64,000 bases of DNA from Trichosphaerium sp. ATCC 40318 (GCA_038496445.1 JALMLS010000173.1:1-64000), one strand, 5' to 3'; shown: positions 7,487-59,346, counted from the first letter of the stretch. Notes: generated by a model not told the origin, from the sequence alone. Program-made: numbers and translations.

Positions 7487-7940
7487 CTAACGACGGTTGT
7501 TTTCAACGTCCCCTGTGCTATAATATACAAAGACAAACCTTCCCCAATGTACGAAAACGTCCATAGCTGGCGCTGGATTGTGAAATAGCTTTGTTCTGAC
7601 TTCCTTTTGTGGGCCACACTCGAATGTTGTAAGGGTTTCCAAACCTTTGGCTCTACCGTTGTAATGGCTGTTCTTGTATCTCATTACTTGCGCGTTCGTC
7701 ATGTTGTACCTTTTTTTGCTCACTAACAATTGGATTAGTGAAACAAAGACCAAAGTGGGGCTGTGTACCTGCTGATCGGTGGTAAGTGAGCTGATAGAGC
7801 TCTGTCTCGTGGACAAACTCGACAGCTGGCTTGTACATCGATGGACGCTGTACTCGCTTTACTCTTGAGGTTCTAGTGTTTTTTATGGCGAATTGATTTG
7901 CACGTGCAGATGCAGAATAGCGGTTATGGGATGTAAACAT
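7487..7940 (-). CDS. Small hypothetical protein, two exons (about 135 aa)
   Basis: ORFs 7653-7961 and 7487-7816 join in frame via a GTACAC...CTAAT..TTAG intron (about 7723-7768). No recognisable motif. Confidence 0.4.
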
Positions 7941-10900
7941 TTCTTTCTTGTTGTTGCGCAAGTTATGGTAGAATTTAATGGATAGAAAGGCCAGAATAAT
8001 TTTGATAAAATAATCTTTTTAGTGCACAGACATGTTGATTTATTTTCGTTGGAGTCTTTTTTATTTAGGGCATAGTTGCAGTTTTAGTGACAAGAAACTT
8101 ACGAGGATGTGTTCACTGTTATAAACCGTATCCGTTACAACAAAATAATAGGCTTACATTGTAGGTGAGCGTCTTGTTCATCGTTGTGCTTTTGAAACTT
8201 TTTTTTCTGCAAAAAATTAAGAACATCTCCGAGTTAGTGACGCTCGGAAAAAAAAGTTTACCCACTCTAATCTCCGTATAAAAGCTTAGATAGTACAATG
8301 TTAACTGTATTTTACCTTTTGGAAATAAACCGAAATAGTCGTTTCAGTGTGAACACAAAAAAGATGAAATTTCAATATTTTTGTTCAAAAAAAAAATTCT
8401 ATTAGTTTTCATGTACCTCATGATGTGCTAACAAATTCCTTACAGATTTAAGAATTTCCGTTAGATCACAAGTGATTTGTGCGTATTTAACTTGGTGCAG
8501 CAAAGCGGTGGTTGTGATACGGTACTGCAAACTAAGCAAAAACAAAAATCCTTCGTAAAAAAATGAGATAGAACAAACCTAAGTTTTGATGGCACTCTGT
8601 GCTGGCCTTGCGATGTGATGCTTTTGTTTTTTCTATTTTTGTCAATCCATTTTTATAGAGAAAGCGAAATTCTTCGGGTAGGGAACTCCACGTGAATACA
8701 AGGTGTTAGAGAGCAAAAGTCTTGTTCTGGTTTTTTTTTCAGATTTGATTTTTTCTTTTGCCATTTTTTGTTTTTGTTGGTTTTGGGGCTAGGTACACAC
8801 GTATTTATATATCATGCGGAGTTTATAAATGATGGGTCAGTTTAAAACGAAGGATGGAAAATTACGTTAAAAACATCAGCAAAAAAACTTGCGAAGCTTC
8901 AGTGTGAGTGACATGTGATAGATTTATTAACGGAAACGTTTTAAGATAGTACACATAGTTATAGTATTGACATATCACCCCACTAGAATTGTAGCTGATC
9001 TACCAACCTAGAAAAGAAGTAAAGAAAGAGATTTTTTTTGTTGCCTTCTTTTCAAAAAAACTAAAGGACAAAAGAAACAAAAAACATGCTCTACGCTTGG
9101 TGCTAGTTGTAGGCTACTTTTGTACCTTTTCAACTTTTTGTCAATACAAAAAGGGTCACTCGAGTTCCCTACGGCGATATTTACCTAAATCAGCTGTTTG
9201 TTGACGTCTTTGGAACTTCTAAACTACACAAATCATTTAACAAAATAGTTTACCTACAACGTTATTTTTATCAACAGTTCCTCTTTGTACAGCGCGTCAT
9301 TGAGGTATGATCGATTCGAAAAGACATCTAATTATTTCTTATGTTTCATTGTCATGCGTGAATAGCACTATCACTTCGTATTGACCGCTGTATAACAATA
9401 GTAAGTCACACAAATACTTGCCTGAAAAAGTCCACTTTTTTTTGCTACAACAAGTGTGCGCTAGCGCTCAGCTACCTGTCATGATAAGTTAAAATGACAT
9501 AGTCTGCAATAATGACGCTTCCGCCGATATAAAATATTTGCCATCAATGGAGTCAAGCATGAAGACACATGTGTCTCATGTTGATTTGGAGAACGTTATG
9601 ATTTCTTTTGTTTAGCGCCACAAAAATTTTACTAATAGTGTGCTAGGGAGCCTCCATCGTATGCCATTTACCTACAACGAGTTTAATCAAAAGAAAAGTA
9701 AGCCTAAATCATATTTTTTCAGGTTTTTTTTTCGTACCAGTTTCCCTTAGATCACCGACATTGTTTTTTTTGAATACCACTACAGCGTATCTTTAAAATC
9801 ACGTGATTTTTTTTATATCATTTTTTGAAGTTTTATGTAACGAAAAGTCTAAACATGACCCTAGTGAAGCTTGACAAAGGACGTACTGATCGCAAAGTTT
9901 ATTAAAGCAGACGCTGGCTTTCAGGTTAGTTTCAAACTTCCATAAAAAAGACCACAAAAACCAAAACGTTTTGTTTGGTGACAACTTACGCATGCTTAAG
10001 TGATGGTTTCATGGCTTAAAATGTAGCCAACTGGATTCAAATTCTTTTGTGATTAAGAAGGATAAAAGCGGCTTGACGTTCATGATAAAAAAGGAAAAAA
10101 AAGAGGATAAGGGTTCGAAAGAGGAAAAGTTTTTTTTCAACAAGATCTTTTTGTAAATTTTTTTTTTTCTTCTCGAGCTCTTCTTTTCGTCCTTGCAATA
10201 AAACAAACTAAAAGCTTTGACGTATGAAAATTTGTTTAATTATTGAAACCACTTGTTAAACGTAATAACAAGGCTACGAGTGCCTTCCAATTCTAGTTTT
10301 TGAGTCCCTAATTTTTAAACAAACCAAAAAACCCACAAAACACTATTACTAGTTGGCAGTAAAAGTTGTCAACAAAACCGTATTTTTTTTATTTTTTTCG
10401 TTCAAAAACACGCATGGTATCGCTCGTACCCATTGAATATTTGATAGCAAAACCCCAACTTGAGTGTGTATTGTATAACGACAAAAAGATCGCACACGTG
10501 ATATCTTAAAAACCTAGTTCGTTATTTTAGTTGACGCCATTTACACTGTTTTTTTTACCATACGCAGCAAAGGTAGCACTTTTCCCAAGACGTTTTCGCC
10601 CGTGAGCTCGTTGCCATTTGCACACCCACGATACATCATTATTTTTTTTCAACTATTCGAAGTGAGCATAAGTTTTTTTTTTTACTTTAGCTCGCTGAAA
10701 CTTACCGTCACGTGATGTCGAACCGTTTTTAATATTTGTTCCATTCCGATCTTTTTTTTTTCAACTTGCAAAACCGTACCCTTTGCTAGCATTCGCCCAA
10801 AAAATGTACGCCACCAAGCGATCAAAAAACAGAAACAATTAATCTCACTACGTATACTTAATGACCTAAAATAAACAACCTAATCTTTACAGGCGACTTA

Positions 10901-15915: not shown

Positions 15916-17333
15916 ATGTTACATAAATCTACGAATATACCTGAAGAGTACGTTTCCAATGAATATTGTTGTGATGTCTTTTTTCTAGTCCTTTCTCACT
16001 CAAACTTGTCTCTGATTACATACTCACAGGCCATTCGAATTACTTTGGCTACCTACAGAAATTATCTTTTGTATCCTGGCGTTTTTAGGCAAGAAATGCC
16101 GTATATCTGCTACATTCGCTTGTAAACTGTTTTCTACAATCATTTTGGAGCATTTAGGGTATTTAACAGTGAGTGTCAAGTCAACAGAAAATCTACACAA
16201 ACTGTACAGAAGTCCTCTTTTAACAAATACGACAGTAATTATTCACAACATTGTTATGACTGATGATGACTTTAAAAGTATTTCTGGTGTTCACCACCTA
16301 GAAATTAACAATTGGGGGATTTCATTAACAGATACTATGTTAGGACACATAGCAGGTGTACGTCATCTGAAAGTTGCGATGAAATTCTCTGGATCCAAGT
16401 TGACAAGTCTTGGGTTTAAGTCACTTCATGGTATTCATACACTACTCATGCCACAAATGTATTTAGAAGATGAATGGCTTCAAGAACTTAATAGTATCCA
16501 TACACTTGATATTTCAAACACAGATATAACAGACAAAGGACTTGCGGCACTGTATGGTTCACACTATTAATTTAAATTGTTGCAGCGAAATTAGCGACAA
16601 AGGTGTCATTGCCATTTCAGGTGGTGTACACAAAATACAGCTTAGTGAATGTAGTATTACAGATCAAAGTGTAAGATATCTAACAAACGCTACTGCATTG
16701 TCATTTTGTGACTGTAAGGGCATTACAGATGAAGGAGTAAAGTATTTGTTAACACAAAATCAAACAACAAAGAAAATCAACAAAATTAACCTTGAACGCT
16801 GTACTCAAATATCAAACAATGTGTTGAAACTTCTTGCTGGTATACCTTGTATAGAGATAGGTGGTTGTGATCAACTAACTGATGAAACTCTGGCATGTTT
16901 GGTAGGTGTAAATCATATTGATTTGAATGATTGTAACGCTTTAACAAATGATGGGATAAAACAATTGGCAGGTGTGAAAGTGATAAATATTTCTTGGCTT
17001 CATTGTGTTGATGATAGCACTTTACAGGCTCTTGCTGGAGTGCATACAATATTTATTGATGATACACATGTGACAGATGAAGGTTTAAGCTACTTAATTG
17101 GAGCTAAAGTCATAAGTCTTTACAAATGTAAGCACATAACTGACAAAGGAGTGAATAGTCTCATTGGTGTTAAGAAAATAGATCTTCATGGCTGCAAACA
17201 AATCACAGATAATGGAGTTGTTAATTTAACAAGCATTGATGAAATTGATTGCCTTAGTACTCAAATAACATGCCAAATGACTGATCAACTAGGATGCAAA
17301 ACAGACGTTGAAACTTTTTGGCCTGATTTTTGA
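15916..17333 (+). CDS. F-box/leucine-rich repeat protein with one frameshift (pseudogene or assembly error)
   Basis: Exon 1 MLHKSTNIPEE, an intron, then F-box LLWLPTEIIFCILAFL..ACKLF and many xxGVHTIxLxxCxxITDxG repeats. The frame breaks near 16557 (TATGGTTCACACT where the repeat consensus expects YGVHT). Confidence 0.78.
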
Positions 17334-17815: not shown

Positions 17816-19573
<1,758 letters not shown>

Positions 19574-21850: not shown

Positions 21851-24800
21851 CTAGTTTCCAGGATTTAAAAAAGACACCAATTCTTGTACAATACTGTGTA
21901 CAGTTACTAGAAGATACTTATCAGCACTTTCAAGAGAGTCATACAAACTATCGTAGACAAGATTGATGTCTGATAGCATGTACTGGTACTTTGCTTGTGT
22001 TATGACATAAATTATAGCAGGCCATACTTTATCAGCTCCACCACATAAACGGTAATAGTCGTACAGTTTTGGCTCTTTGTCTTTTGTTTTTTGGGAAAAA
22101 ATTGAGAATGTGCTTCTTTTTTTCTTTTCCGTATTAGGTTGAGAAGCTGCTTTTTTTTTTTTTTCGGTAATACTTATGCAAATGCCGATACGTCGACTCA
22201 TCTCTCTTAAGTGACAAAATTTTTGGTAAGGAGATTTCGCTTCTGATATTCGTTTTATTGCATCAACAGCATCTTTCCACTGTGTAGAACCTTGGAGCGC
22301 CTATTTCGTAAAATATTAAGTACAAAAGAATATTTTGGAACACGTGCTTCTGGCAAGGGGTCGTTTGTGTGTTCAAGCATAGCCTTGGTCAACTCCTTAT
22401 CTGCTTTTTCGTACTAAATAAATAGAAAATTAGGCTTGAAGGTACATGGTGGAAAGTATCTTAAGTACATGTCTTTTGTATGTGCCATACACTAGAGAAG
22501 AGATATCTTGTTCCTCAAATAGTTTGGCATGTACCCAAGCCATAATCGTATTTTTAACCTCATATGGGAGCTTAAATTTTGGTGTAAAATTGCGAACTAT
22601 CGTAGCGAGTACTTCCTTCAATGCACTTGCAAGTTTTTCGACATCTGACGTGCTGTGCTTTTGACCAAACGTAATACCAAATTGTTTAATAGAATTCTCA
22701 TGTTGTCTACTCTACAATTTAGACTTATAAGGGTACCACAACGTACTCTAGTTGTTCATATAACGCAGTAGTACTAAATACCGGACTATTCTTGTAAACC
22801 TTGAATATATCAGAAATAATCACGTTTCTAAAGTCACGTACTTGATGGTTTTCTGGTTTTATTTTATCTACCATCCACCCAGTTATGCCACCTTTGCATA
22901 TAGGACACTTATCTTGTAGCTTATAAGCACAATAGGTACATAAATGGTTGCAACGATGAATTGTGTCTTTACACACAAAACATATTGGTGTCTTAACAAA
23001 TCATGTGAGTGTTAAAGCGTGAATTTTGTTACATACCGTGCTTTCTGTTGGGTCAACTTTCTCTCTTATTTCTGCAGTATTAAAGTTATATTGAGTACAT
23101 GCCCCCTCTATTTTTACTCTATGTCTTGTCAAGAACTCTCTCTTCCATACATATTCACATAGCGCAGTTTCAGTTAAGTCCAAAGACAATCGTTGCGCCT
23201 GCATTATTAGGTTAGATTACAATAGTTAAAAAAAAAAAACAGTTAAGTATTCTTACGTTAACAACACTCTCAATGTCTAAGACGCAAACATTAAGGCAAT
23301 TACATATGTACGCAATATTCCCTTCAAGGTTGCCCAGAGCCTTATTAGTCAAATCAGTGAACTCTGACTTGTTTGTGATATCTTTTAAGTTCTTTATCAG
23401 CATTTCAAATAGTCTCTGTTTGGTTTCTACATCGTGTTAGTCTAAACAAACGTAAAAGCACTACAAAGCATACCTTGTTCATCCTTTCCAGACGGCATTT
23501 TAGAAGTCCATATGTTTGGAAGAGCAATTGCTCCCGCTCCAACAGCCAGAACAGCCACACCGCCAGTAGTCACTGTAAGTACAGATAGCATCGTGGCAGC
23601 TGCAGGGTTCAATAAGTAGTATTCAACAACATTTTTGTACCAACTATTGCTACACTTGCCGCACCAGCAACGCCAAGTGAAGCTGTAGCAACATTTGAAC
23701 TTGTAGGTGCTTGGAAAAATGAGAGTAAGAAATTAAACGGACGAATGGTATATACCTAATCGTTGAGCATTCCACTATCAATTTATAAGTACACTTTGGT
23801 AAAAAATAGTAATAAATAACACGAACCTGAGTACTCAATTCAAGAGTTTGGGATGAGCTAAAGAAAACCATGACAACAAATTTAAATAAAAGGTGCGAAA
23901 GCAAGGCAAAACCCACTGAAGGTACTTTTTCTTCCTTTTTTTTTTTTTTTTTTTTTCATTCGCTGCACATATGATTTGAACGTACCAAACTGAACTACTT
24001 TTATTCTTAAAAACTTCTTTGGTGATTGTTTGTAAGCTTTCTACTTGACTTTGTATCCACCTTTTGAATTAAATTAATTGTTAAATACACGTGATCAAAT
24101 AATACAAAACACTCACACATCTAGTTTTTTTCGCTCCTCATGGACAAAGGTAATCAGAGTATCATGTGAATATCTATCAAAATATATCTTTAATTGTTCA
24201 TAAACCTTCGACTCGTAATCAGTGAAGTGCCTATTTCTTTGGAACCAGCTTGAACTTGGTAATTCAAAAGGAACTGTTGGTGTCATTTCCTAAAGACAAA
24301 AACCAATATAAGCGCGTCATAAGAGAACAGTTTTTGATGAAAAAAAAACGATACACATACCTCTAATTTAGTAGAACCACACAGTACGTTTTTAAATTTG
24401 TCTACTACTTTTGAGAAACGCGCCTTGAAATTTTTCTTAACTTCTTCTACTTTTAGTCTTGCTTCCGTTTCAAATCTTCGAATCTCAATATGTATTTTTT
24501 TAACTTTTCGTTCAACATCTTTGTAATCAATCTTGGACAGAGTAGTGTTTGGCTTATCAATCGATTTTGTAACGTGTGCCAATATTATCTTGGACAAGAA
24601 TAAATGCTGCACACTAAATAGAGGATCAACAGTCACAAATGTATTCTATCCATGTTTCTGTACCGAATCAATTGACGCATATTACTCAACATTGTTGATA
24701 CTGTTGTGTTTGACACTGCTTGCAAACTTTCACCGAGAGCTCTTTTGAACTCAGTGAAACCCGGACTCTTTTCGCCATAACTACATTGCTTTATGTTGAA

Positions 24801-26098
24801 CTATGTGTACTACCATTAAATATACTAACAATTACATTCCACGCACTTTAAATATTTTAGGGTCCTCAATCTGTAACTCGTCCCGTAATATCTTCTCTGC
24901 CTTCCGAATATCTTCTTCTGAGTCTGTACTGTAAATATTGAGAACAAACAAAACATTTTTGCCCATGGAATGCTGATGAGCAATAAATTTTAGTTCACGT
25001 TCTCCCTAAATTGTAGAGTCAGTTCTGTAAATCTCTTTGTGCTCGTACAGTAACGTCTCCACACAGTAACACGTGGATAATCAAAGGTGCTGAATAAACA
25101 TAATGTTGTGCTTGTAATCTTGAGCGTTCAGTGCTATTTCCAGGGGTATCGATGATGCATATACCAGGCTTGTCTATGCCAAAAATAGGGCTACATTTGG
25201 TCAAAAAAAAAAGTTCCAGATTTTTTTATGTACCGTTGAAATTGGACTTCCTTTACTAGCGGATATTTATGTAGCACCTTCGGTATATCAAATAGTACAC
25301 GCAGTGTTTCACCTGGTTATTATTAGCTGTGTAGTTACAGATAATAGTATACTAACCAAGCTTATCTGCGGAAATTTCTGGATTTTTTTGCAAAGTCGCC
25401 AATACCGATTTAAGTTCCAGGTGCTTGCCTTGTACATCAGGACGATCCCACGTTTGTTTTATATCAGCGTTGGGCTCTAAAGCAACGTGTGCTGCTCTAA
25501 ATTGGTTAAGGATAAAAAAAGTTACGAAGTACAAAAAATTACCTGGCTGTGTCCCGCATTCCTGAAGAAATAATACAAGGACAAGATGTGCACCGTGTTT
25601 TTGCAGTTGGTAGTATATCTGCGCCAAGAAATATATTGCCGAGGGTGCTTTTTCCTGCATTACGACCATAGAGTACCACAGTGGCCTTATCACTTTCAAG
25701 CTTTGGTTCGTTCAATCAGATTTGCTATCAAAAAGTGTACCGTACCCTTTCCAAGTGCTCCCTAGACATTTCATGTACAACAGCAAACGGGGAAGTCCCA
25801 GAAAACAGATTTTTGGAAACGACAGACACCTCCTTCATTTCTGAGAACGATTTTAATGCCATCTACAAATTTAAGTAAGGTGGGGTGGCATATGGGCCGT
25901 TTCACGTACTTGAAATTCTTTGTCTTCATAAAACTCTTTTACTTTTTCTTTTAGCGATATGGTGAGGCCAAGCTGTTCACTGAGCGAATTGATATCAATT
26001 TCTGGCTCCAGCTCTGAGTGTATGTGAGTAATTCAATCATTGGCATTAGAAAAAGCGCTGATACCAGTATTAGTATTTAGTTCCACACTCTTTTCCAT
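21851..26098 (-). CDS. Dynamin-like GTPase - TM hairpin - RING - VPS9 fusion protein, copy 1
   Basis: Spliced: MEKSVELNTNT|ELEPEID..; VVLYGRNAGKSTLGNIFLGADILPTAKTRCT (dynamin-type G1/G2); IIDTPG (G3); hydrophobic GVAGAASVAIV..MLSVLTVTTGGVAVLAVGAGAIALP; RING-like CFVC..CNHLCTYC..CPIC; VPS9 SPYQKFCHL..GGADKVWPAIIYVITQA..KYLLVTV. Confidence 0.85.
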
Positions 26099-26337: not shown

Positions 26338-27473
26338 ATGACGTGCTGTTCTCCTGTAACCACTAAGCCACCGACAACAGAGCGAACTCTTGTATACAAA
26401 GTTGTAGTTCTTGGGGCCATATATGTGGGTACGGTTTATAACACATTAATATTTACACTAACCTTGTTTTAAGGGAAAACTAGCGTACATAAAATCAAGT
26501 CACTTGTTCAAAACATCTCAACTCATTTGTAGCTTGCCGGGCGCATAACAACAAACACATTTTATGATGGTACGCCAATCACATGTAGCAAAGGCTCAAA
26601 TTACCAGACCAGAAACCCACAATTGCAGCCGCATACTTGACGAAAAATCTTGACACAGACGACGGAAAACAGATAACTCTAGAAATATGGTACGCAAGTC
26701 TATTTTGTTTCATTACACTAATCTTATTCCACCAGGGACACAAGTGGTTTGGAAATGTACGACTTGGATTCAATCTAACGAAATATCCTAGGTGACGAGC
26801 GATACAATTCTATCATACCTATGTACTACAGGTGCGCCATATAAATCGCGATATCTGGTGTTATAAATTAAAGTTACAGTTCGACTGGCTTTTTTTCCCC
26901 AACGTCACAGAATGAGATTATGTATTTATTTCGCTTATAAAATGAGCGTTTTCAACGTGTGGGGAAAAAAAGCGGAGAATTTGAACGAAATCCTTTTTCA
27001 AATACAACTAATTTGTTCCTCTTGTTAACCAATATGCTAGAAACGCAGACCTTGCCCTTATTGTATATGATGTAACCAATTCAGAGTCACTTGAAGTAAG
27101 AGAATTTATTTTCACAAGGAAAAGTGTAACAAGTTTAGAAAGCTGATTATTGGATGAAGACGCTTCAAAAAAAAGTGCTCGATTGTGACACCATTGTATG
27201 TGCAAATAAGATTGATGAAGTAGATCATAGAATCACTTTAGAGGATGGTCAAAGTAAGTTTAACAACCCAAAGGTTGCTGCGTTCATAGAGGTATCAGCA
27301 AAAACAGGAGAGGGTGTTGATGGGTACCTTGAAATTTTAATTACTTTTTTTTACAACTTGATTTTCTGAAACAACTTAGTTTACTTAAACACATGGCAAA
27401 GATTTTGAGCACAAAAACCCCACAAAATTCTCATCAACGTAATGGATTGCGAGTTTTAGAGAGCACAGAATAA
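26338..27473 (+). CDS. Atypical Rab5-like small GTPase, copy A (9 exons, intact)
   Basis: Spliced: [106 protein letters not shown]. All introns are GT-AG. Confidence 0.88.
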
Positions 27474-28972: not shown

Positions 28973-30075
28973 TTATAAATTTACCAGTCCTCCCTGTTTA
29001 TGAGAGCTTTGTGGGGGTTTGGCACTCAAAATCTTTGCCATGTGTGCAAGTAAGCTAAGTTGTTTCAGAACATCAGGGTGTAACAAAAAAAGTAATTAAA
29101 AATCTGTTTCAAAGTACCCATCAACACCCTCTCCTGTTGAAGCTGATACCTCTGTGAACGCGGTAACCTGTAGATCTTCAAACTTGCATTGAACTTCCTC
29201 TGAAGTGACTGTTCGATCTACTCTATCAATCTTATTTGCACATACAATGGTGTAACAATCGGGCACATTTTTTTGAAGCTCCCTCATCCAATAATCAGCT
29301 CTCTAAACTTGTTACACTTTTCCTAGTGAAAACCACCCTGGTGACAATAAATAAATTCTCTTACTTCGAGTGACTCTGAATTGGTTACATCATATACAAT
29401 AAGGGCAAGGTCTGCGTTTCTAGCATATTGGTTAACAAGAGGAACCAATTAGTTATATTTGAAAAAGGATTTCCTTCAAATTCTCTGCTTTTTTTCACCA
29501 CGTTGGGAAAAAAAGTCAGAGTTGAACATAGTCGAACTGCAACTTTAATTACACCAGCGGTTTATATGGCGCACCTGTAGTATATAGGCATAAGAGCCTT
29601 GTATCGCTCGTGACCTAGGATATTTCGTTAGATTGTATCCAAATTGTACATTTCCAAACCACTTGTGTCCCTAGTGGAATAACATTAGTGTAATGAACAC
29701 AATAAACTTACTTACCATATTTCTAGACCTATCTGTGTTCCTTCGTCTGTGACAAGGTCTTTCGTCATGTATACGCCTCCAATTGTGGGTTCCTTGTCTG
29801 GTAATTTGAGTTTGATATAGACATATGATTGGCGTACCATCATCAAATGTGTTGTTTATTATGCGTGTGCCAAGCTACAAATGAGTTGAGATGTTTGAAC
29901 AAGTGACTTGATTTTATGTACGCTAGTTTTCCCTTAAAACAAGGTTAGTGTAAATATTAATGTATTATAAAACCGTACCCACAAATATGGCCCCAAGAAA
30001 TACAACTTTGTATCTTGTAAGAGTTTCCTCGTTTGTTGGTGGGTTTTCTACAGTGTAACAGCAAGAGGTGCTCAT
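28973..30075 (-). CDS. Atypical Rab5-like small GTPase, copy B (intact)
   Basis: Spliced: [109 protein letters not shown]. Confidence 0.88.
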
Positions 30076-30311
30076 GTTATTTTTTTTTTTTGTTTATTGA
30101 ATTTACAAGAACTATTCACTCACATGTTGAGCCTTGTGCGTTCACATGAAAGAAATTGGCGGTTCTTTAGTTCCACAAAGCATAACATAAAGTGAGCAAA
30201 AAAAATACGGTTCCTTTCATTGAAAAACAAAGTGTAAAAGTAGGAAGGAACCAACTACAAAACAGAAAATAAACGGACAAACCAACACAAACACGACTAG
30301 TTCTTTTGTCC
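30076..30311. promoter_or_regulatory. Putative bidirectional promoter of pair 2 (Rab B / dynamin-VPS9)
   Basis: 236 bp between divergent ATGs; mirror of 26099-26337. Confidence 0.6.
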
Positions 30312-33300
30312 ATGGAAAAGAGTGTGGAACTAAATACTAATGGTACCAGTGGTTATTCTTATGCCAACAATTGAATTACTCACATACACTCAAGAGTTGG
30401 AGCTAGAAATTGATATCAATTTGCTCAGTGAACAGCTTGGCCTCACCATATTGCTGAAAGAAAAAGTAAAAGAGTTTTATGAAGACAAAGAATTTCAAGT
30501 GCGTGAAACGGCCCATATGCCACCCCACCTTACTTAAATTTGTAGACGGCATTAAAATCGTTCTCAGAAATGAAGGAGGTGTCTGTCGTTTCCAAAAATC
30601 TGTTTTCTGGGACTTCCCCGTTTGCTGTTGTACATGAAATGTCTAGGGAGCACTTGAAAAGGGTAAGGTACACTTTTTGATATTAAATCTGATTAAACGA
30701 ACCACAGCTCGAAAGTGATAAGGCCACTGTGGTACTCTATGGTGGTAATGCAGGAAAAAGCACCCTTGGCAATATATTTCTTGGCGCAGATATACTACCA
30801 ACAGCAAAAACACGGTGCACATCTTGTTCTTGTATTATTTCTTCAGGAATGCGGGACACAGCCAGGTAATTTTTTGTACTTCGTAACTTTTTTTTCCTTA
30901 AACCAATTTAGAGCAGCACGCGTTGCTTTAGAGCCCAACGCTGATATAAAACAAACGTGGGATCGTCCTGATGTACAAGGCAAGCACCTGGAACTTAAAT
31001 CGGTATTGGCGACTTTGCAAAAAAATCCAGAAATTTCCGCAGATAAGCTTGGTTAGTATACTATTATCTGTAACTACACAGCTAATAATAACCAAGGTGA
31101 AACACTACGTGTACTATTTGATATACCGAAGGCGCTGCATAAATATCCGCTAGTAAAGGAAGTCCAATTTCAACAGTACTTAAAAAAATCTGGAACTTTT
31201 TTTTTGACCAAATGTAGCCCTATTTTTGGCATAGACAAGCCTGGTATATGCATCATCGATACCCCTGGAAATAGCACTGAACGCTCAAGATTACAAGCAA
31301 AACATTATGTTTATTCAGCATCTTTGATTATCCACGTGTTACTGTGTGGAGATGTTACTGTACGAGCACAAAGAGATTTACAGAACTGACTCTACAATTT
31401 AGGGAGAACGTGAACTAAAATTTATTGCTCATCAACATTCCATGGGCAAAAATGTTTTGTTTGTTCTCAATATTTACAGTACAGACTCAGAAGAAGATAT
31501 TCGGAAGGCAGAGAAGATATTACGGGACGAGTTACAGATTGAGGACCCTAAAATATTTAAAGTGCGTGGAATTTAATTGTTTGTAATATTTAATGGTAGC
31601 ACACATAGTTCAACATAAAGCAATGTAGTAAAGGTGAAAAGAGTCCAGATTTCACTAAGTTCAAAAGAGCTCTCAGTGAAAGTTTGCAAGCAGTGTCAAA
31701 CACAACAGTATCAACAATGTTGAGTAATATGCGTCAATTGATTCGGTATGGAAACATGGATAGAATACATTTGTGCCTGTTGATCCTCTATTTAGTGTGC
31801 AGCATTTATTCTTGTCCAAGATAATATTGGCACATGTTACGAAATCGATTGATAAGCCAAACACTACTCTGTCCAAGATTGATTACAAAGATGTTGAACG
31901 AAAAGTTAAAAAAATACATATTGAGATTCGAAGATTTGAAACGGAAGCAAGACTAAAAGTAGAAGAAGTTAAGAAAAATTTCAAGGCGCGTTTCTCAACA
32001 GTAGTAGACAAATTTAAAAACGTACTGTGTGGTTCTACTATATTAGAGGTATGTGTATCGTTTTTTTTTTCATCAACAACTGTTCTCTTATGACGTGCTT
32101 ATTGGTTTTTGTCTTTAGGAAATGACACCAACAGTTCCTTTTGAATTACCAACAAGTTCACGCTGGTTCCAAAGCAATAGGCACTTCACTGACTACGAGT
32201 CGAAGGTTTATGAACAATTAAAGATAAATTTTGATAGATATTCACATGATACTCTGATTACCTTTGTCCATGAAGAGCGAAAAAAACTAGATGTGTGAGT
32301 GTTTTGTATTATTTGATCACGTGTATTTAACAATTAATTTAATTCAAAAGGTGGATACAAAGTCAAGTAGAAAGCTTACAAACAATCACCAGAGAAGTTT
32401 TTAAGAATAAAAGTAGTTCAGTTTGGTACGTTCAAATCATATGTACAACGAATGAAAAAAAAAAAAAAAAGGAAGAGAGTACCTTCAGTGGGTTTTGCCT
32501 TGCTTTCACACATTTTATTTAAATTTGTGGTCATGGTTTTCTTTAGCTCATCTCAAACTCTTGAATTGAGTACTCAGGTTCGTTATTTATTACTATTTTT
32601 TACCAAAGTGTACTTATAAATTGATAGTGGAATGCTCAACGATTAGGTATATACCATTCGTCCGTTTAATTTCTTAGTCTCATATTTTTCCAAGCACCTA
32701 CAAGTTCAAATGTTGCTACAGCTTCATTTGGCGTTGCTGGTGCTGCAAGTGTAGCAATAGTTGGTACAACAATATTATTGAATACTACTTATTGATCCCT
32801 GCAGCTGCCACGATGCTATCTGTACTTACAGTGACTACTGGTGGTATGGCCGTTCTGGCTGTTGGAGCGGGAGCAATTGCTCTTCCAAACATATGGCCTT
32901 CTACAATGCCGTCTGGAAACGATGAACAAGGTATGGTTTGTAGTGCTTTTATGTTTGTTTAGACTAACACGATGCTAACACGATGTAGAAACCAAACAGA
33001 GACTATTTGAAATGCTGATAAAGAACTTAAAAGATATCACAAACAAGGCAGAGTTCACTAATTTGACTAATAAGGCTCTGGGCAACCTTGAAGGGAATAT
33101 TGCGTACATATGTAATTGCCTTAATGTTTGCGTCTTAGACATTGAGAGTGTTGTTAACGTAAGAATACTTAACTGGTTTTTTTTTTTTATCTATTGTAAT
33201 CTAACCTAATAATGCAGGCGCAACGATTGTCTTTGGACTTAACTGAAACTGCACTATGTGAATATGTATGGAAGAGAGAGTTCTTGACAAAACATAGAGT

Positions 33301-34571
33301 AAAAATAGAGGGGGCATGTACTCAATATAACTTTAATACTGCAGAAATAAGAGAGAAAGTTGACCCAGCAACAGAAAGCATGGTATTTAAAAAAATTCAC
33401 GCTTTAACACTCACATGATTTGTTAAGACACCAATATGTTTTGTGTGTAAAGACCCAATTCATCGTTGCAACCATTTATGTACCTATTGTGCTTATAAGC
33501 TAAAAGAGAAGTGTCCTATATGCGAAGGTGGCATAACTGGGTGGATGGTAGATAAAATAAAACCAGAAAACCATCAAGTACGTTACTTTAGAAATGTGAT
33601 TATTTCTGATATATTCAACAAGGTTTACAAGAATAGTACGGTATATAGTACTACTGCGTTATATGAACAACTAGAGTACGTCATGGTACCCTTATAAGTC
33701 TAAATTGTAGAGTAGACAACATGAGAATTCTATTAAACAATTTGGTATTTTGTTTGGTCAAAAGCACACCACGTCAGATGTCAAAGAACTTGCTTGTGCA
33801 TTGAAAGATGTACTCGCTAAGATAGTTGGCAACTTTACACCAAAATTTAAGCTCCCATATGAGGTTAAAAATACGATTATGGCTTGGGTACATGCCAAAC
33901 TATTTGAGGAACAAGATATCTCTTCTCTAGTGTATGGCACATACAAAAGACATGTACTTAAGATACTTTCCACCATGTACCTTCAAGCCTAATTTTCTAT
34001 TTATTTAGTACGAAAAGGAAGATAAGGAGTTGACCAAGGCTATGCTTGAACACACAAACGACCCCTTGCCAGAAGCACGTGTTCCAAAATATTCTTTTGT
34101 ACTTAATATTTTACGAAATAGGTGCTCCAAGGTTCTACACAGTGGAAAGATGCTGTTGATGCAATAAAACGAATGTCAGAAGCGAAATCTCCTTACCAAA
34201 AATTTTGTCACTTAAGAGAGATGAGTCGACGTATCGGCATTTGCATAAGTATTACCGAAAAAAAAAAAAAAGCAGCTTCTCAACCTATTACGGAAAAGAA
34301 AAAAAGAAGCACATTCTCAATTTTTTCCCAAAAAACAAAAGACAAAGAGCCAAAACCGTATGACTATTACTTTTTATGTGGTGGAGCTGATGAAGTATGG
34401 CCTGCTTTAACTTATGTCATAACACAAGCAAAGTACCAGTACATGCTATCAGACATCAATCTTGTCTACGATAGTTTGTATGACTCTCTTGAAAGTGCTG
34501 ATGAGTATCTTCTACTAACTGTACACAATATCGTAAAAAAATTGGTGTCTATTTTAAATCATGGAAACTAG
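30312..34571 (+). CDS. Dynamin-like GTPase - TM hairpin - RING - VPS9 fusion protein, copy 2
   Basis: Same exon structure as copy 1: VVLYGGNAGKSTLGNIFLGADILPT, IIDTPG, TM segments at about 32700-32900, CFVCKDPIHRCNHLCTYC..CPIC and VPS9 GGADEVWPALTYVITQA..EYLLLTV. Confidence 0.85.
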
Positions 34572-35147: not shown

Positions 35148-36196
35148 ATGAGCTCATGCTGCTACATTGTAGAAAAGCCACTGGCAGAAAAGCCTGCAAG
35201 ATACAAAGCAGTATTTCTTGGGTGTTCAGCTGTGGGTACGGTTTATAATACATTAATATTTACACTAACCTTGTTTTAAGGGAAAACTAGCGTACATAAA
35301 ATCAAGTCACTTGTTCAAACATCTCAACTCATTTTTAGCTTGGCATACGCATAACAAGAAACACATTTGATGAATGTACGCCAATCATATGTCTATAGCA
35401 AACTCTCAAACTACTAGACCAAAAACCCACAATTAGAGCTGCATTCATTACGAAAACTCTTGTAACAGACGAAGGAAAACAAATACACCTGGACATTTGG
35501 TAAGTACCCTATATTGTTTCATACCACTAATGTTATTCCACAGGGACACAGACGGTGCCTGAACTGCGTTAATTTTAGACAATCTAACAAAATATCCTAG
35601 GTTCTGAGCGATACAGTGCTCTCCTACCTATATACTACAGGCACACCAATAAAAAGTTGTACTAATCGCTGGTGTTGTAAACTAAAATATCACGTGTTTA
35701 AACCCTTACTTTGGTGGAATTTTGACTTGTTCCTCTCTTGTGTTAACCAAATACCCTTAGAGGCGCAGACCTTGCCATAATTGTATACGATGTATCCAAC
35801 AAAGAGTCATTCAAAGTAAGAGAATTTATTTGTTTACACAGATAGAAGCGTAACATGACTAGAGAGCTGATTGTTGGGTGGAAGAGATTCATGAAAGAGT
35901 GCACAATTGTCACACCATTGTATGTGCAAATAAGATTGATAGAGTAGATCATAGAACAATCACTTTAGAGGATGGTCAAAGCAAGTTTAACAACCCAAAG
36001 GTTAGCGCGTTCATAGAAGTATCAGCTTCAACAGGAGAGGGTGTTGATGGGTACCTTGAAATTTTAATTACTTTTTTTACAACTTGATTTTCTGAAACAA
36101 CTTAGTTTACTTGTACACATGGCAAAGATTTTGAGCAGCAAACCTCCAAAAAGCCTGCAAAAACATAAAGGACTTGTAAATTTATCAATTGTATAG
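35148..36196 (+). CDS. Atypical Rab5-like small GTPase, copy C (intact only if a weak GC donor at 35641 is used)
   Basis: [105 protein letters not shown]. Confidence 0.72.
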
Positions 36197-36965: not shown

Positions 36966-37760
36966 TCAGGTGTCCCGATAGATTTTATGAACACCAACAA
37001 GGGATTGTAACCCTTTATCTGTAATGTACCTGCAAAATGAAAGAGATATGGTATGGACGCCAGCAAGTGCTTTTAATCCTTCATCTGTAACTGATGTAGC
37101 ATCTAGAAAGATTGTATGAACGCTGGCAAGTGCTTCTAACCCTTTATCTGAAATTGATGTGCAAGATAGATAGATTGTGTGAACACCAGACAGTGCTTTC
37201 AATCCTTCATCTGTAACTGAGGTATCATTAAGAGAAATCATATGTACACCAGAAAGTGCTTTCAACCCTTCATCTGTAACCGAGGTATCATTAAGAGAAA
37301 TGACATATACACCAGAAAGTGCTTTCAACCCTTCATCTGTAACCGAGGTATCAGTAAGAGAAATGGTATGTACGCCAGCAAGTGCTTTTACCCCTTCATC
37401 AATTAAAGGATGCGCACATTGACTAAGGTTAATGGAACGAACACCAGCAAACGTCTTTATAACATCATTAGACGTTGCTTTGCCAGTAAGTGTGATGTGT
37501 GTGTTGGAGAGTACTTGAGTGTTTTAAAATAGCTTTTGCTTGGTCAACACTTGAAATACAGACGCGACAGTATCCTATAATATCGTGAATGATAGATGCA
37601 AGGCGATGACAAGTTTGAGAAGCGGCAAAGCGTGAGTTTGTTGTTTTACGTAAAATATGAGCTAAAATCTCTGTGGGAAGGTCTAATATGCTTGTCGTAG
37701 GTTAGAACAGTTTAACAACTAATTTTGTTCTTACTTCTCGGTTATGCTCTTTTCTGACAT
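36966..37760 (-). pseudogene. F-box/LRR gene with 66-bp (22-aa) tandem LRRs, frameshifted
   Basis: F-box ILDLPTEILAHIL..SQTCHRL, a frame break near 37525, then near-identical repeats ALSGVHxISLNDTSVTDEGLK. No clear splice acceptor at the expected position after exon 1. Confidence 0.7.
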
Positions 37761-52318: not shown

Positions 52319-53463
52319 TCAACCTAAGCTTGCATCTAGTGATACAGCAAGAGATATACCTTCCTCTTCTTCTTCAGAAGATTCTTCCTCTTCAGATGAT
52401 GACTCCTCTTCAGAAGATGATTCTTCTTCCTCAGACGAAGACTCTTCATCATCTTCATCTCCACTACTTTCTTCCATAGAAGACTCTTCCTCTTCTTCAT
52501 CAGAAACAGAATCAGAGCTCTCACTCTCATCTGAAGAGTCTTGTCCTATGCCTGCTGAAGGCATAGCAACGTTAACGTTACCTTCAACACCAAATGATCC
52601 TTCTTCATCATCAGAAGAAGAAGAATCTTCATCATCATCAGAAGATGACTCTTCAGAATTATCGTCTTCTTCATCAACAGATTTTTCATAAAGAGAATAA
52701 TCCTCCTCTTGTGATGTATAATCCGAAGAGTCATCAACCACAAGGGCTCCTTTAGCACTTGCTTTAAGGCCTCCATTGATCATTTTAATGCTTGGTTGAT
52801 GTCCTGACTCTGAAAGCCTTAAAGAACCAGAAACTGACTCTCCTGAACCTGTGCTTGAAGATTCTTCTAATTTAGCTGCTAACTGCTTTGACGCTGATTC
52901 TTTACGCTTAGATGTGGCTACTGAGAGCAAAACGCCCTCTTCTTCTACATCTGCGCCTCCAACGATTGTGACGCTTCCCAAATTCTTTTTACTCTTCTTT
53001 TTCGCCTTCTTAGACTCAGATGGAGGAGCATTAGCGCTTGCACCAGCAGTATAAGCCTTAGGTGGGCAACAGCAACACCATAGTATTATCACTAGGATAC
53101 CAACGCCAAGGAGTACTTGTAAGCGGGTTAGATTTACAAGCAACGATTTTTGGTAGTTTTTGAAATGAATTGTATTAAAAACGTTGTCATACGCGTAAAA
53201 GTGGTATAGTGAATCAATTGATGCAATTAGACATCGTTTTAATGGAAAGTAATTTTTTTTGTGTTTTACGTACCACCAACGCATACTAATATCACCGTAT
53301 CTACCGTTTCTAGAAATGCAAGCGATGCTAAGGATGCGTTAGAATAAAATTATTCAATCTCGAACGTACATGTTGTAGGTGTATCTATAGGCGCTAATGG
53401 AGTATTTTGCGCCACTACGATAGATAAACAGGCGAGTACTAAAACTACAACCGAAATAGTCAT
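52319..53463 (-). CDS. Type I membrane protein with Ser/Glu/Asp-rich cytoplasmic tail
   Basis: Signal peptide MTISVVVLVLACLSIVVAQ; TM VLLGVGILVIILW followed by CCCC and a Lys cluster; long acidic low-complexity C-terminus. Confidence 0.7.
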
Positions 53464-57894: not shown

Positions 57895-58902
57895 TCATAC
57901 CCAGGCTATTTTATAAAGGTCAATATGTAAAGGAAGTCCCTTTGTTTCAGTTCTTGCAATCATATAATTAACTTGTGCTGTTTCAGAACCATAGCTAGCT
58001 TCGTAAGCAGGAGTTGGTTCCAGAGCACCATCAAGGGTTTCAAAGTTCCCTATTAATTTCCATTTCAACCCAAACTCATCCAAATCAGCTATAAAATGAG
58101 GAAGACGTATTTTGGAATCACCATGTGAACTACAAACAACGTGAAGATTGTTTTCTGGTCCTTTCAAAAACTCACAATTTTCGTATCCAACTGGAAACTC
58201 TGAACCTTCAGGGAATATTGGGTTATTATCGTATTCCTTATAAGGAGGTAGTAAAGAGTCTGTGACGTTACTGTTCGGAAAATAAGCTCCTTCTTGAGCG
58301 TCTTTGAAACCTGAAACGCCTTTTGTAAAGTAAATTCTTTTTCCTTTAATTTTCATAATTCTACCACTATCAAGTCTTCTCGCATTCCAAGTCTGATTCC
58401 AAGACGGTGCTTTTCCTGTTGGATAAGCAACAAGACCATGACGAGTCCAAGGTCCGTGCATTGTTGGTGATGATGCTACAAGTTGTGCTGACTCTTCAGT
58501 TGATGAATAGTTCTTTCCAGTTCCCGTATAAAAAACCCAAAACTTTCCGTTATCGTAGATGAGAGATGACGAAAACGTTCCAGCATAGTCAAACGCGTTT
58601 TCGTCTGAAGTGCGGTTAAATAATAACCCATGATCAGTCCATTCTCCTGTAATGTTTTTTGCGGAGTAGTAATGTAAGAAAGCGTGCCAGCCAGCTTGTG
58701 TTCCTTGAGATAACGGGATATAGTCCGACACAAACCAATACGTTCCATCTACGAGAATAACGCTGCTTGGATCGCGTAGATGCCCTGTTTTGTCCGCAGC
58801 TATCGTTTTAACTCTTGTAAGTGATGGCGTAAGAAAGCATAGATAGCAAGGTATTAACACGAAGAGAAGAACACTTGTTATAGGTAAGAAATGGTGCATC
58901 AT
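57895..58902 (-). CDS. Secreted five-bladed beta-propeller glycoside hydrolase (GH117/GH32/GH43-like), intronless
   Basis: Single ORF with signal peptide; RDPSSVILVDGTY, WTDHG..AFD..GKFWVFYTG, ASSPTMHGPWTR, RLDSG and YENCE. Confidence 0.78.
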   Translation of the reverse strand: MMHHFLPITSVLLFVLIPCYLCFLTPSLTRVKTIAADKTGHLRDPSSVILVDGTYWFVSDYIPLSQGTQAGWHAFLHYYSAKNITGEWTDHGLLFNRTSDENAFDYAGTFSSSLIYDNGKFWVFYTGTGKNYSSTEESAQLVASSPTMHGPWTRHGLVAYPTGKAPSWNQTWNARRLDSGRIMKIKGKRIYFTKGVSGFKDAQEGAYFPNSNVTDSLLPPYKEYDNNPIFPEGSEFPVGYENCEFLKGPENNLHVVCSSHGDSKIRLPHFIADLDEFGLKWKLIGNFETLDGALEPTPAYEASYGSETAQVNYMIARTETKGLPLHIDLYKIAWV

Positions 58903-59346
58903 ACCGAACGTCGAAAAATACAATGACTATTCATTAAGGGCTATTGCCGTCCTTAAGTATGTCGCCATATATTGTGTATGTGTATGTGTTAAACATGATA
59001 GCCTTGTTATGTGAAATTTAGATACTGACGAAGGAAGGATAAAGTAAATGAAAGTTCATATGAAAAGTTAAAAAAAACCACAAGTACTGTCGCAATATCA
59101 CGTGATTTTCAAGGTTGAATCAAATCCAATTACTATTCAATTCTATTACCTTTATTTAACGTCGTGTCATATTCCGTAGCTAAGGTTATAAGACGAGTTG
59201 TTACAGGTACGAGGTAAGGAGAATTCTAGTTTTATTAAATTTATAACATTACAAGGAGTTATATTCACATAACAAATGAGGAACCGACAGTTGTATGTAC
59301 ATTGTAAAAAATGCTCTACCAACAATGTTCTTATAATATATCTCCA

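Follow-up and report, generated by a model that had tools for sequence, protein, structure and literature searches.

Positions 30312–34571 of a 64,000-nt stretch of DNA from Trichosphaerium sp. ATCC 40318 (GCA_038496445.1, JALMLS010000173.1:1-64000; the whole stretch is called the window here) probably, at a likelihood put at about 70%, form one functional gene for a predicted membrane-anchored dynamin-like/VPS9 protein of ~1000 residues, which would work by the mechanism proposed below. The parts follow each other in the order N-terminal helix, G domain of Dynamin_N type, helical stalk, hydrophobic hairpin, return helices, zinc finger with seven cysteines, helical bundle (HB) and VPS9 domain (coordinates in Table 1). 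The gene (copy B) has an inverted paralogue in the same window (copy A), and three relatives (P0001, P0002 and P0003, on contigs L002, L001 and L003, respectively) were recovered from other sequence collections. The family is apparently rare and undescribed; its novelty is a VPS9 guanine nucleotide exchange factor (GEF) on a chassis resembling bacterial dynamin-like proteins (BDLP) and mitofusins, i.e. known module types newly combined. An earlier reading of the window (the original prediction) had placed a dynamin-like GTPase, a hydrophobic hairpin, a RING and a VPS9 domain on one polypeptide.

The host DNA is eukaryotic, with ~36% GC and short, stop-free coding pieces across the three plus frames. 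The exon chain of copy B was assembled manually from stop-free pieces and then checked by script, according to which all introns (37–125 nt) have GT..AG borders and the frame stays open for ~1012 codons; tblastn with P0002 against the window was collinear exon by exon. ATG and stop codon bound one plus-strand gene at exactly the limits of the original prediction. That the interval is one intact gene for a single polypeptide, as had also been proposed, is supported indirectly, because the frame runs through all junctions, the paralogues differ by coding-type indels and the homologues of two other organisms are uninterrupted single open reading frames (ORFs). The 23-nt mini-exon at 32547–32569 is uncertain. 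The most likely end of exon 18 is 33675, with a 37-nt intron behind it (33676–33712), since the finger-to-bundle spacing then is ~50 residues, compared with 47–48 in the homologues, and since a 3-nt indel at 33616 then becomes exonic; a single 133-nt intron at 33578–33710 (980 residues) was disfavoured on the same two grounds. The K-rich 31 codons at 34249–34341 (93 nt) were treated, with some uncertainty, as an in-frame intron, because they are missing in P0002 and have GT..AG borders. ATG 30361 was discarded as start codon, as it would frameshift copy A, whereas ATG 30312 with a 52-nt intron leaves both copies open.

Relatives were collected by an exhaustive HMMER search of 1.84 billion representative proteins with the VPS9 piece as query, which at E ≤ 1e-3 returned two proteins only; with P0003, found by a region search, three relatives were found in all among these representatives. 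P0002 (923 residues, Logan SRR28798987) is encoded without interruption at 7771–10542 of a genomic contig of 12.3 kb (L001) and contains a Dynamin_N match, an uncharged stretch, a Cys finger and a VPS9 domain at 48 bits. P0003 (851 residues, SRR14005095, L003 2673–5228) is likewise uninterrupted from G domain to VPS9, and its locus is syntenic with that of P0002, in that each has a protein kinase gene upstream, read from the other strand, and a gene for ~380 residues downstream. Both genes consist of one long exon apart from introns around the 5′ P-loop exon; the window gene has 21 introns. P0001, from a JGI metagenome, was called as a stand-alone protein of 241 residues, which is a truncated call: contig L002 continues upstream through finger and return helices, and return helices, finger, HB and VPS9 lie in one frame except for one in-frame stop (262–264, RKE*QHLV) between return helices and zinc finger, which may represent a very short intron, a fault of the assembly or a pseudogene. 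The domain order is therefore maintained as a single reading frame in other organisms (P0002, P0003), and the architecture search that the original prediction had suggested as a check gave the same fusion in these two proteins and its finger-VPS9 part in L002. Full-text literature searches returned no paper on a dynamin-like protein fused to VPS9, and a scan of viral contigs with the stalk exon gave no match. Two metagenome scans were blank, yet missed the contig L002 itself and are uninformative on distribution; a word-index search with the 149-residue VPS9 piece gave nothing at 82–260 residues, a length window that makes the result uninformative.

Family scans of the window gene were made exon by exon, and the other evidence was taken from the homologues. 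The predicted C-terminal VPS9 domain was recovered by Pfam (34.6 bits; cut-off 27) and by Atlas language-model features, among which the last piece of copy B falls in VPS9 clusters (0.92); the homologues score 46–56 bits. A profile of the family matched Rabex-5 (E = 1.6e-6) and AtVPS9a from Arabidopsis (1.2e-4) and aligned the Asp finger, the D of GADE (34383–34394; D codon 34389–34391; GADK in copy A), as GaD to SADD of Rabex-5 (D313); the Tyr equivalent to Rabex-5 Y354 is kept. Foldseek, also suggested earlier as a check, was run on a model of P0002, the C-terminal part of which (predicted local distance difference test, pLDDT, 70–87) matched the HB+VPS9 tandem of Rabex-5 (2ot3_A, E = 1e-5, 237 aligned columns, TMt 0.66); the tandem fold was seen on this homologue model only. 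VPS9 domains are exchange factors, that is activators, of the Rab5 family and not sensors; the Rab sensing and the membrane fusion or disruption put forward in the original prediction are hypothetical roles. Rabex-5/RABGEF1 and plant VPS9a share with the window protein the tandem, the Asp finger and the Tyr, and Rabex-5 also has a zinc finger upstream of the bundle. In contrast to Rabex-5, which is soluble and recruited via ubiquitin and Rabaptin-5, the window protein is predicted to be membrane-integral via its hairpin and has a dynamin-like module, its finger is not of A20 type, and its VPS9 domain has diverged so far that phmmer, given only the window copy, found nothing in the PDB at E ≤ 0.01. 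To our knowledge, the well-studied VPS9-domain exchange factors are soluble and membrane-recruited, and no dynamin-like protein of membrane fusion or fission is known to include a Rab regulator.

The helical stalk and two Gly/Ala-rich hydrophobic segments of the original prediction are present, the latter as exons 32695–32763 and 32805–32930 (charged fraction 0.00 and 0.05, maximum KD15 1.72 and 1.99, respectively). Together they give a predicted hairpin between charged helical regions, i.e. a helical stalk with an inserted membrane-binding element; the corresponding uncharged stretch of P0002 and P0003 is ~56 residues long. Behind the hairpin, the return helices contain the motif ALCEYVWKRE, to which SLCEYLKMKS of P0002 and QLCTYLQMRE of L002 correspond. 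An AlphaFold2 (AF2) model of P0002 made with three sequences has long stalk helices at low confidence (pLDDT 48). N-terminal helices, G domain, long helical stalk, central hydrophobic hairpin or paddle and return helices are likewise found in BDLP and mitofusin/Fzo1. Dynamin_N is the best Pfam family, and in Atlas features the nearest neighbours of P0002 residues 1–620 are clusters of bacterial dynamin-like proteins (Dynamin_N 100%, PF21808; 0.92–0.94). Membership of the N-terminal half in the dynamin superfamily, in its BDLP/mitofusin type, is probable. The window gene differs from these systems in its G1 motif, one residue short, and its G4 motif without Asp, in a Dynamin_N match just under the cut-off and in the lack of any solved dynamin-like protein detectable by sequence. 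We know of no BDLP or mitofusin with a C-terminal zinc finger and HB-VPS9.

In the mechanism proposed, the hairpin would serve as anchor in a membrane of endosome or phagosome type and leave both halves of the protein cytosolic, as in mitofusin or atlastin. The Rabex-5-like HB-VPS9 tandem, having kept its Asp finger, would switch on a Rab5-type GTPase of that membrane, and the dynamin-like part would provide self-assembly, tethering or curvature-dependent clustering. The likely substrate would be the product of the Rab5-like gene that is divergently transcribed from a shared intergenic region of ~240 nt and was co-duplicated. The membrane location, the exchange activity and the binding of nucleotides are predictions. 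If true, the hard-wiring of a Rab5-type activator onto a mitofusin/BDLP-style membrane anchor would provide a natural experiment on how organelle identity, set by Rab activation, can be coupled to the remodelling or tethering of membranes.

The dynamin-like GTPase with its DTPG motif, as predicted, was detected by Dynamin_N on two collinear exons of copy B: 26.5 bits (E = 7.7e-6, profile 8–43) on the P-loop exon, which contains the stretch YGGNAGKSTLGNIFLGADILPT at 30738–30800, and 15.4 bits (profile 95–138) on the G3 exon, the gathering score being 27 bits; P0002 scored 26.1 bits over profile 14–156. NCBIfam gave weak generic TRAFAC GTPase and DynA matches only, and phmmer with the G1 exon against the PDB gave Era only, at 0.016. 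Both unusual motifs described in the original prediction are real. The P-loop is G-x3-GKST in both window copies (YGRNAGKST in copy A) and not G-x4-GK[ST], which is found in upstream exons of the homologues (GRSKVGKST in L001, GPSNVGKST in L003). At G4, both copies read NIYS (within VLNIYS in copy B) and lack the guanine-binding Asp of [NT]KxD or NxxD, whereas the homologues have N-x-x-D. GKST, the G2 Thr and a G3 of the form DxxG (DTPG) are kept. These G1 and G4 deviations are specific to the window copies among the family members compared. The altered nucleotide specificity proposed earlier was a fair deduction from them in so far as it is widened to altered or lost binding, and the G domain of the window copies would be impaired or altered in guanine-nucleotide binding. 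Because the short P-loop and the lost G4 Asp occur together in both copies, the dynamin-like part of the window copies is, on balance, seen mainly as a nucleotide-impaired scaffold and not as a GTP-driven fusion or fission motor. Given canonical relatives of the same architecture, the degenerate P-loop and G4 offer a ready comparison of an active with a likely dead dynamin-like module.

Alternatively, the G domain could be an active NTPase of changed base specificity (ATP, XTP or promiscuous) within a membrane-remodelling motor with built-in Rab GEF. This reading is possible but clearly less probable than the impaired scaffold: the motifs kept speak for it, as does the constraint on the G domain, the strongest between the paralogues (ratio of non-synonymous to synonymous divergence, pN/pS, 0.30), which also fits a structural role, and within the dynamin superfamily the EHD proteins use ATP. 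It is opposed by the coincidence of the G4 Asp loss with the short P-loop in both copies, and we know of no functional precedent for a Walker A loop shortened to G-x3-GK[ST]. P0003 is without the G3 glycine (DFPF), a loss suggesting that the family tolerates decay of G motifs.

The compact RING of the original prediction corresponds to a Cys/His pattern that does exist at 33434–33517, but its spacing, His conservation and profile scores are not those of a RING. In an alignment of five sequences, seven Cys are invariant (C-x2-C-x6-C-x3-C-x2-C-x7/8-C-x2-C, then Trp), whereas canonical RING spacing is C-x2-C-x(9-39)-C-x(1-3)-H-x(2-3)-C-x2-C-x(4-48)-C-x2-C; loop 1 of the family has 5–6 residues and His and Cys are one residue apart. 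Conservation covers all seven Cys (7/7) and not the eighth zinc ligand, as the candidate fourth ligand His is Arg in P0002 and P0003 (2/4 lineages), which have a His within CPHC instead; on the basis of two lineages only, this His may compensate for the absent one. Among Pfam models, zf-C3HC4_3 matched the two window copies only (2/5 of the family) at 19.7–21.9 bits (E = 1.5e-4 and 8.7e-5; cut-off 27), DZR all five members (best E = 5.3e-4; 14.7–17.9 bits in three per-sequence scans; cut-off 27.3) and DZR_2 four of the five, all of these matches being below cut-off. Against the PDB, the family profile gave zinc ribbons at E = 0.003–0.03 (Spt4/RpoE″ 0.003, Nop10 0.013) and RINGs at E > 6 only, and phmmer with the finger exon gave only non-significant matches to cIAP1, CRIPT and BRCA1. 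An AF2 model of the finger exon from five sequences (pLDDT 55) is too weak to decide the fold. The last four Cys (LC-x2-C-x7/8-CP-x-C, then W) are those that align with the Spt4/RpoE″/Nop10 ribbons; the ribbon and DZR matches stay sub-cut-off, the window family has three additional invariant Cys upstream, and the trafficking context is unrelated. Rather than a RING binding a ubiquitin-conjugating enzyme (E2), a (double) zinc ribbon with a role in interactions is the most likely identity of the finger. The ubiquitylation proposed earlier was not sustained, as the finger failed all RING tests run.

A tri-functional enzyme, with a genuine RING ubiquitin ligase (E3) between an active dynamin-like NTPase of altered specificity and a VPS9 GEF, by which ubiquitylation would be coupled to Rab activation and membrane fusion, is thus an unlikely alternative. 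For the single sequences of both window copies, zf-C3HC4_3 is the best Pfam match, eight candidate ligands can be named in these copies, with RING-like C-x-[IV]-C and C-P-x-C, and the His of CPHC could replace the absent one in P0002 and P0003; moreover, the AF2 model has a RING-like helix after a C-x2-C pair, at low confidence. With regard to precedent, VPS9 is accompanied in Rabex-5 by a zinc finger that binds ubiquitin or acts as a ligase. RNF112/neurolastin, a dynamin-superfamily GTPase with a C3HC4 RING, a C-terminal hydrophobic membrane element and a link to endosomes, joins a RING to an atlastin-like GTPase and, as a membrane-bound GTPase of the dynamin family with a zinc finger, comes closest as a precedent (PMC12012479). 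In RNF112, however, the RING is N-terminal, the G domain atlastin-like and VPS9 absent, whereas the window finger follows the hairpin and the G domain is BDLP-like. Set against all this are RING matches that without exception lie below the gathering score, a loop 1 shorter than the canonical at least nine residues, His-x1-Cys in place of x2–3, the Arg in half of the lineages, and the wider reach of DZR and the lower E-values of the ribbons; the zinc-ribbon reading is the more likely.

Copies A and B are ~96–97% identical at the nucleotide level, introns included, suggesting that the duplication was very recent or that gene conversion took place. Divergence is 3.0% in exons and 3.6% in introns. 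The exonic indels (4/4) are 3 nt long, and none of the 11 intronic ones (1, 1, 1, 1, 1, 2, 7, 2, 2, 11 and 1 nt) is a multiple of 3. Every splice site is kept in copy A, and its ~1010 codons are free of stops. The overall pN/pS between the copies is 0.63, with 0.40 for the stalk, and for VPS9 (34143–34568 versus 21854–22279) it is ~1.85, from 14 non-synonymous and 2 synonymous differences. The contrast between VPS9 and G domain is suggestive of diversification of the Rab-binding module, the counts being small. The same figures could be read as two young duplicates drifting to pseudogenes, in which the degenerate G1 and G4 motifs and the high VPS9 ratio would mean loss of function; overall pN/pS and an exon divergence close to that of the introns agree with this. 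Such decay is nevertheless improbable in view of the ~1010 codons without stops or frameshifts in both copies, the kept splice sites of copy A, indels in frame in every exonic and in no intronic case, and the low ratios of G domain and stalk (0.30–0.40). In addition, the G1 and G4 deviations are identical in both copies and predate the duplication.

That the interval holds two neighbouring genes or transcripts, one for a dynamin-like membrane protein and another for a zinc-finger-VPS9 GEF, is very improbable: the longest gaps of the model (121 and 125 nt) do lie directly 5′ of the hairpin, the transcript is predicted from genomic sequence and P0001 was called as a stand-alone protein, but frame and canonical splice sites run through every junction, reading of the copy B sequence downstream of the hairpin revealed no initiator Met and no promoter room, P0002 and P0003 are uninterrupted, and the P0001 call is truncated.

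Several observations weigh against the reading as one functional dynamin-like/VPS9 gene. Its single transcript is predicted from genomic sequence, each single Dynamin_N match is just under the Pfam cut-off, and no solved dynamin-like protein was matched in the PDB searches, that with the family profile included. Both the overall pN/pS and the VPS9 ratio are compatible with relaxed constraint. Outside HB-VPS9, the AF2 models are of low confidence (pLDDT 48 and 55), so that the folds of stalk and finger are tentative. Finally, L001 and L003 have no adjacent Rab gene; since a kinase stands upstream there, the proposed pairing of GEF and Rab is local to the window.

Within the window, the duplicated inverted unit has the order copy A (minus), Rab (plus), Rab (minus), copy B (plus). 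The last exon of the Rab-like gene beside copy B scored 29 bits with Pfam Ras, and its sole PDB match was Rab5 (8xtu_A, E = 3.4e-4). Speculatively, and with low probability, gene and divergent Rab5-like neighbour might be a dedicated, co-duplicating GEF-Rab pair, in which a dynamin-like pseudo-GTPase scaffold embedded in the membrane would put the fast-diversifying surface of VPS9 beside its private Rab, giving a lineage-specific, possibly pathogen- or prey-driven route to new endosome or phagosome identities in amoebae.

Table 1 Features of the predicted dynamin-like/VPS9 gene, its paralogue and the adjacent Rab-like genes (window coordinates)
Feature	Position	Strand	Remarks
Whole gene, copy B	30312–34571	+	22 exons, ~1012 residues; ATG 30312, stop 34569–34571
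Copy B, exons 1–11	30312–30342, 30395–30498, 30546–30662, 30708–30865, 30912–31051, 31097–31175, 31218–31359, 31403–31561, 31609–31745, 31796–32048, 32119–32294	+	
Copy B, exons 12–22	32351–32425, 32547–32569, 32695–32763, 32805–32930, 32989–33158, 33218–33382, 33428–33675, 33713–33953, 34009–34098, 34143–34248, 34342–34571	+	
P-loop (G1), YGGNAGKST	30738–30764	+	by sequence reading; one residue shorter than G-x4-GKS/T
G3, DTPG	31258–31269	+	aligns with DCPG of P0002
G4 position, NIYS	31469–31480	+	guanine-specifying Asp lost; aligns with NVHD (P0002) and NRRD (P0003)
Helical stalk region, exons 9–13	31609–32569	+	charged helix-type sequence
Predicted hydrophobic hairpin, exons 14–15	32695–32930	+	~48 uncharged Gly/Ala/Ser/Thr-rich residues
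Return helices, exons 16–17	32989–33382	+	between hairpin and zinc finger
Zinc finger, C-x2-C-x6-C-x3-C-x2-C-x7-C-x2-C	33434–33517	+	7 invariant Cys; His inside CNHLC in copy B
Helical bundle, exons 19–20	33713–34098	+	aligns with P0002 residues 700–820
VPS9 domain, exons 21–22	34143–34568	+	
Inverted paralogue, copy A	21851–26098	−	same 22-exon model, ~1010 residues, intact; by tblastn of each exon piece
Rab5-like small GTPase gene	29096–30076	−	head-to-head with copy B, start codons ~236 nt apart
Rab counterpart of copy A	~26338–27366	+	head-to-head with copy A

A third exon of the Ras/Rab family (35878–36084, plus strand; Pfam Ras 27.4 bits) is located just 3′ of copy B and resembles the last exon of the Rab gene beside copy A. 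Elsewhere in the window, leucine-rich repeat genes of LRR_6 type with a recurring GVH.I unit were seen at 16145–17333 (plus; Pfam LRR_6 E = 1.3e-11 on 16542–17330) and 36966–37328 (minus), and an ORF at 18962–19573 (plus) combines a ZZ-type zinc finger (Pfam ZZ 59.8 bits) with a second Cys-rich repeat. The minus-strand ORF 52319–53284 (321 residues) contains a single hydrophobic segment and, behind it, a long tail that is extremely acidic and rich in Ser, Glu and Asp. On the same strand, ORF 57895–58923 (342 residues, N-terminal hydrophobic segment) is intron-free, which is unusual amid its intron-rich neighbours, and carries the signature of a GH43/GH32-type beta-propeller glycosidase (Glyco_hydro_32N 28.3 bits, GH43 31.4 bits).

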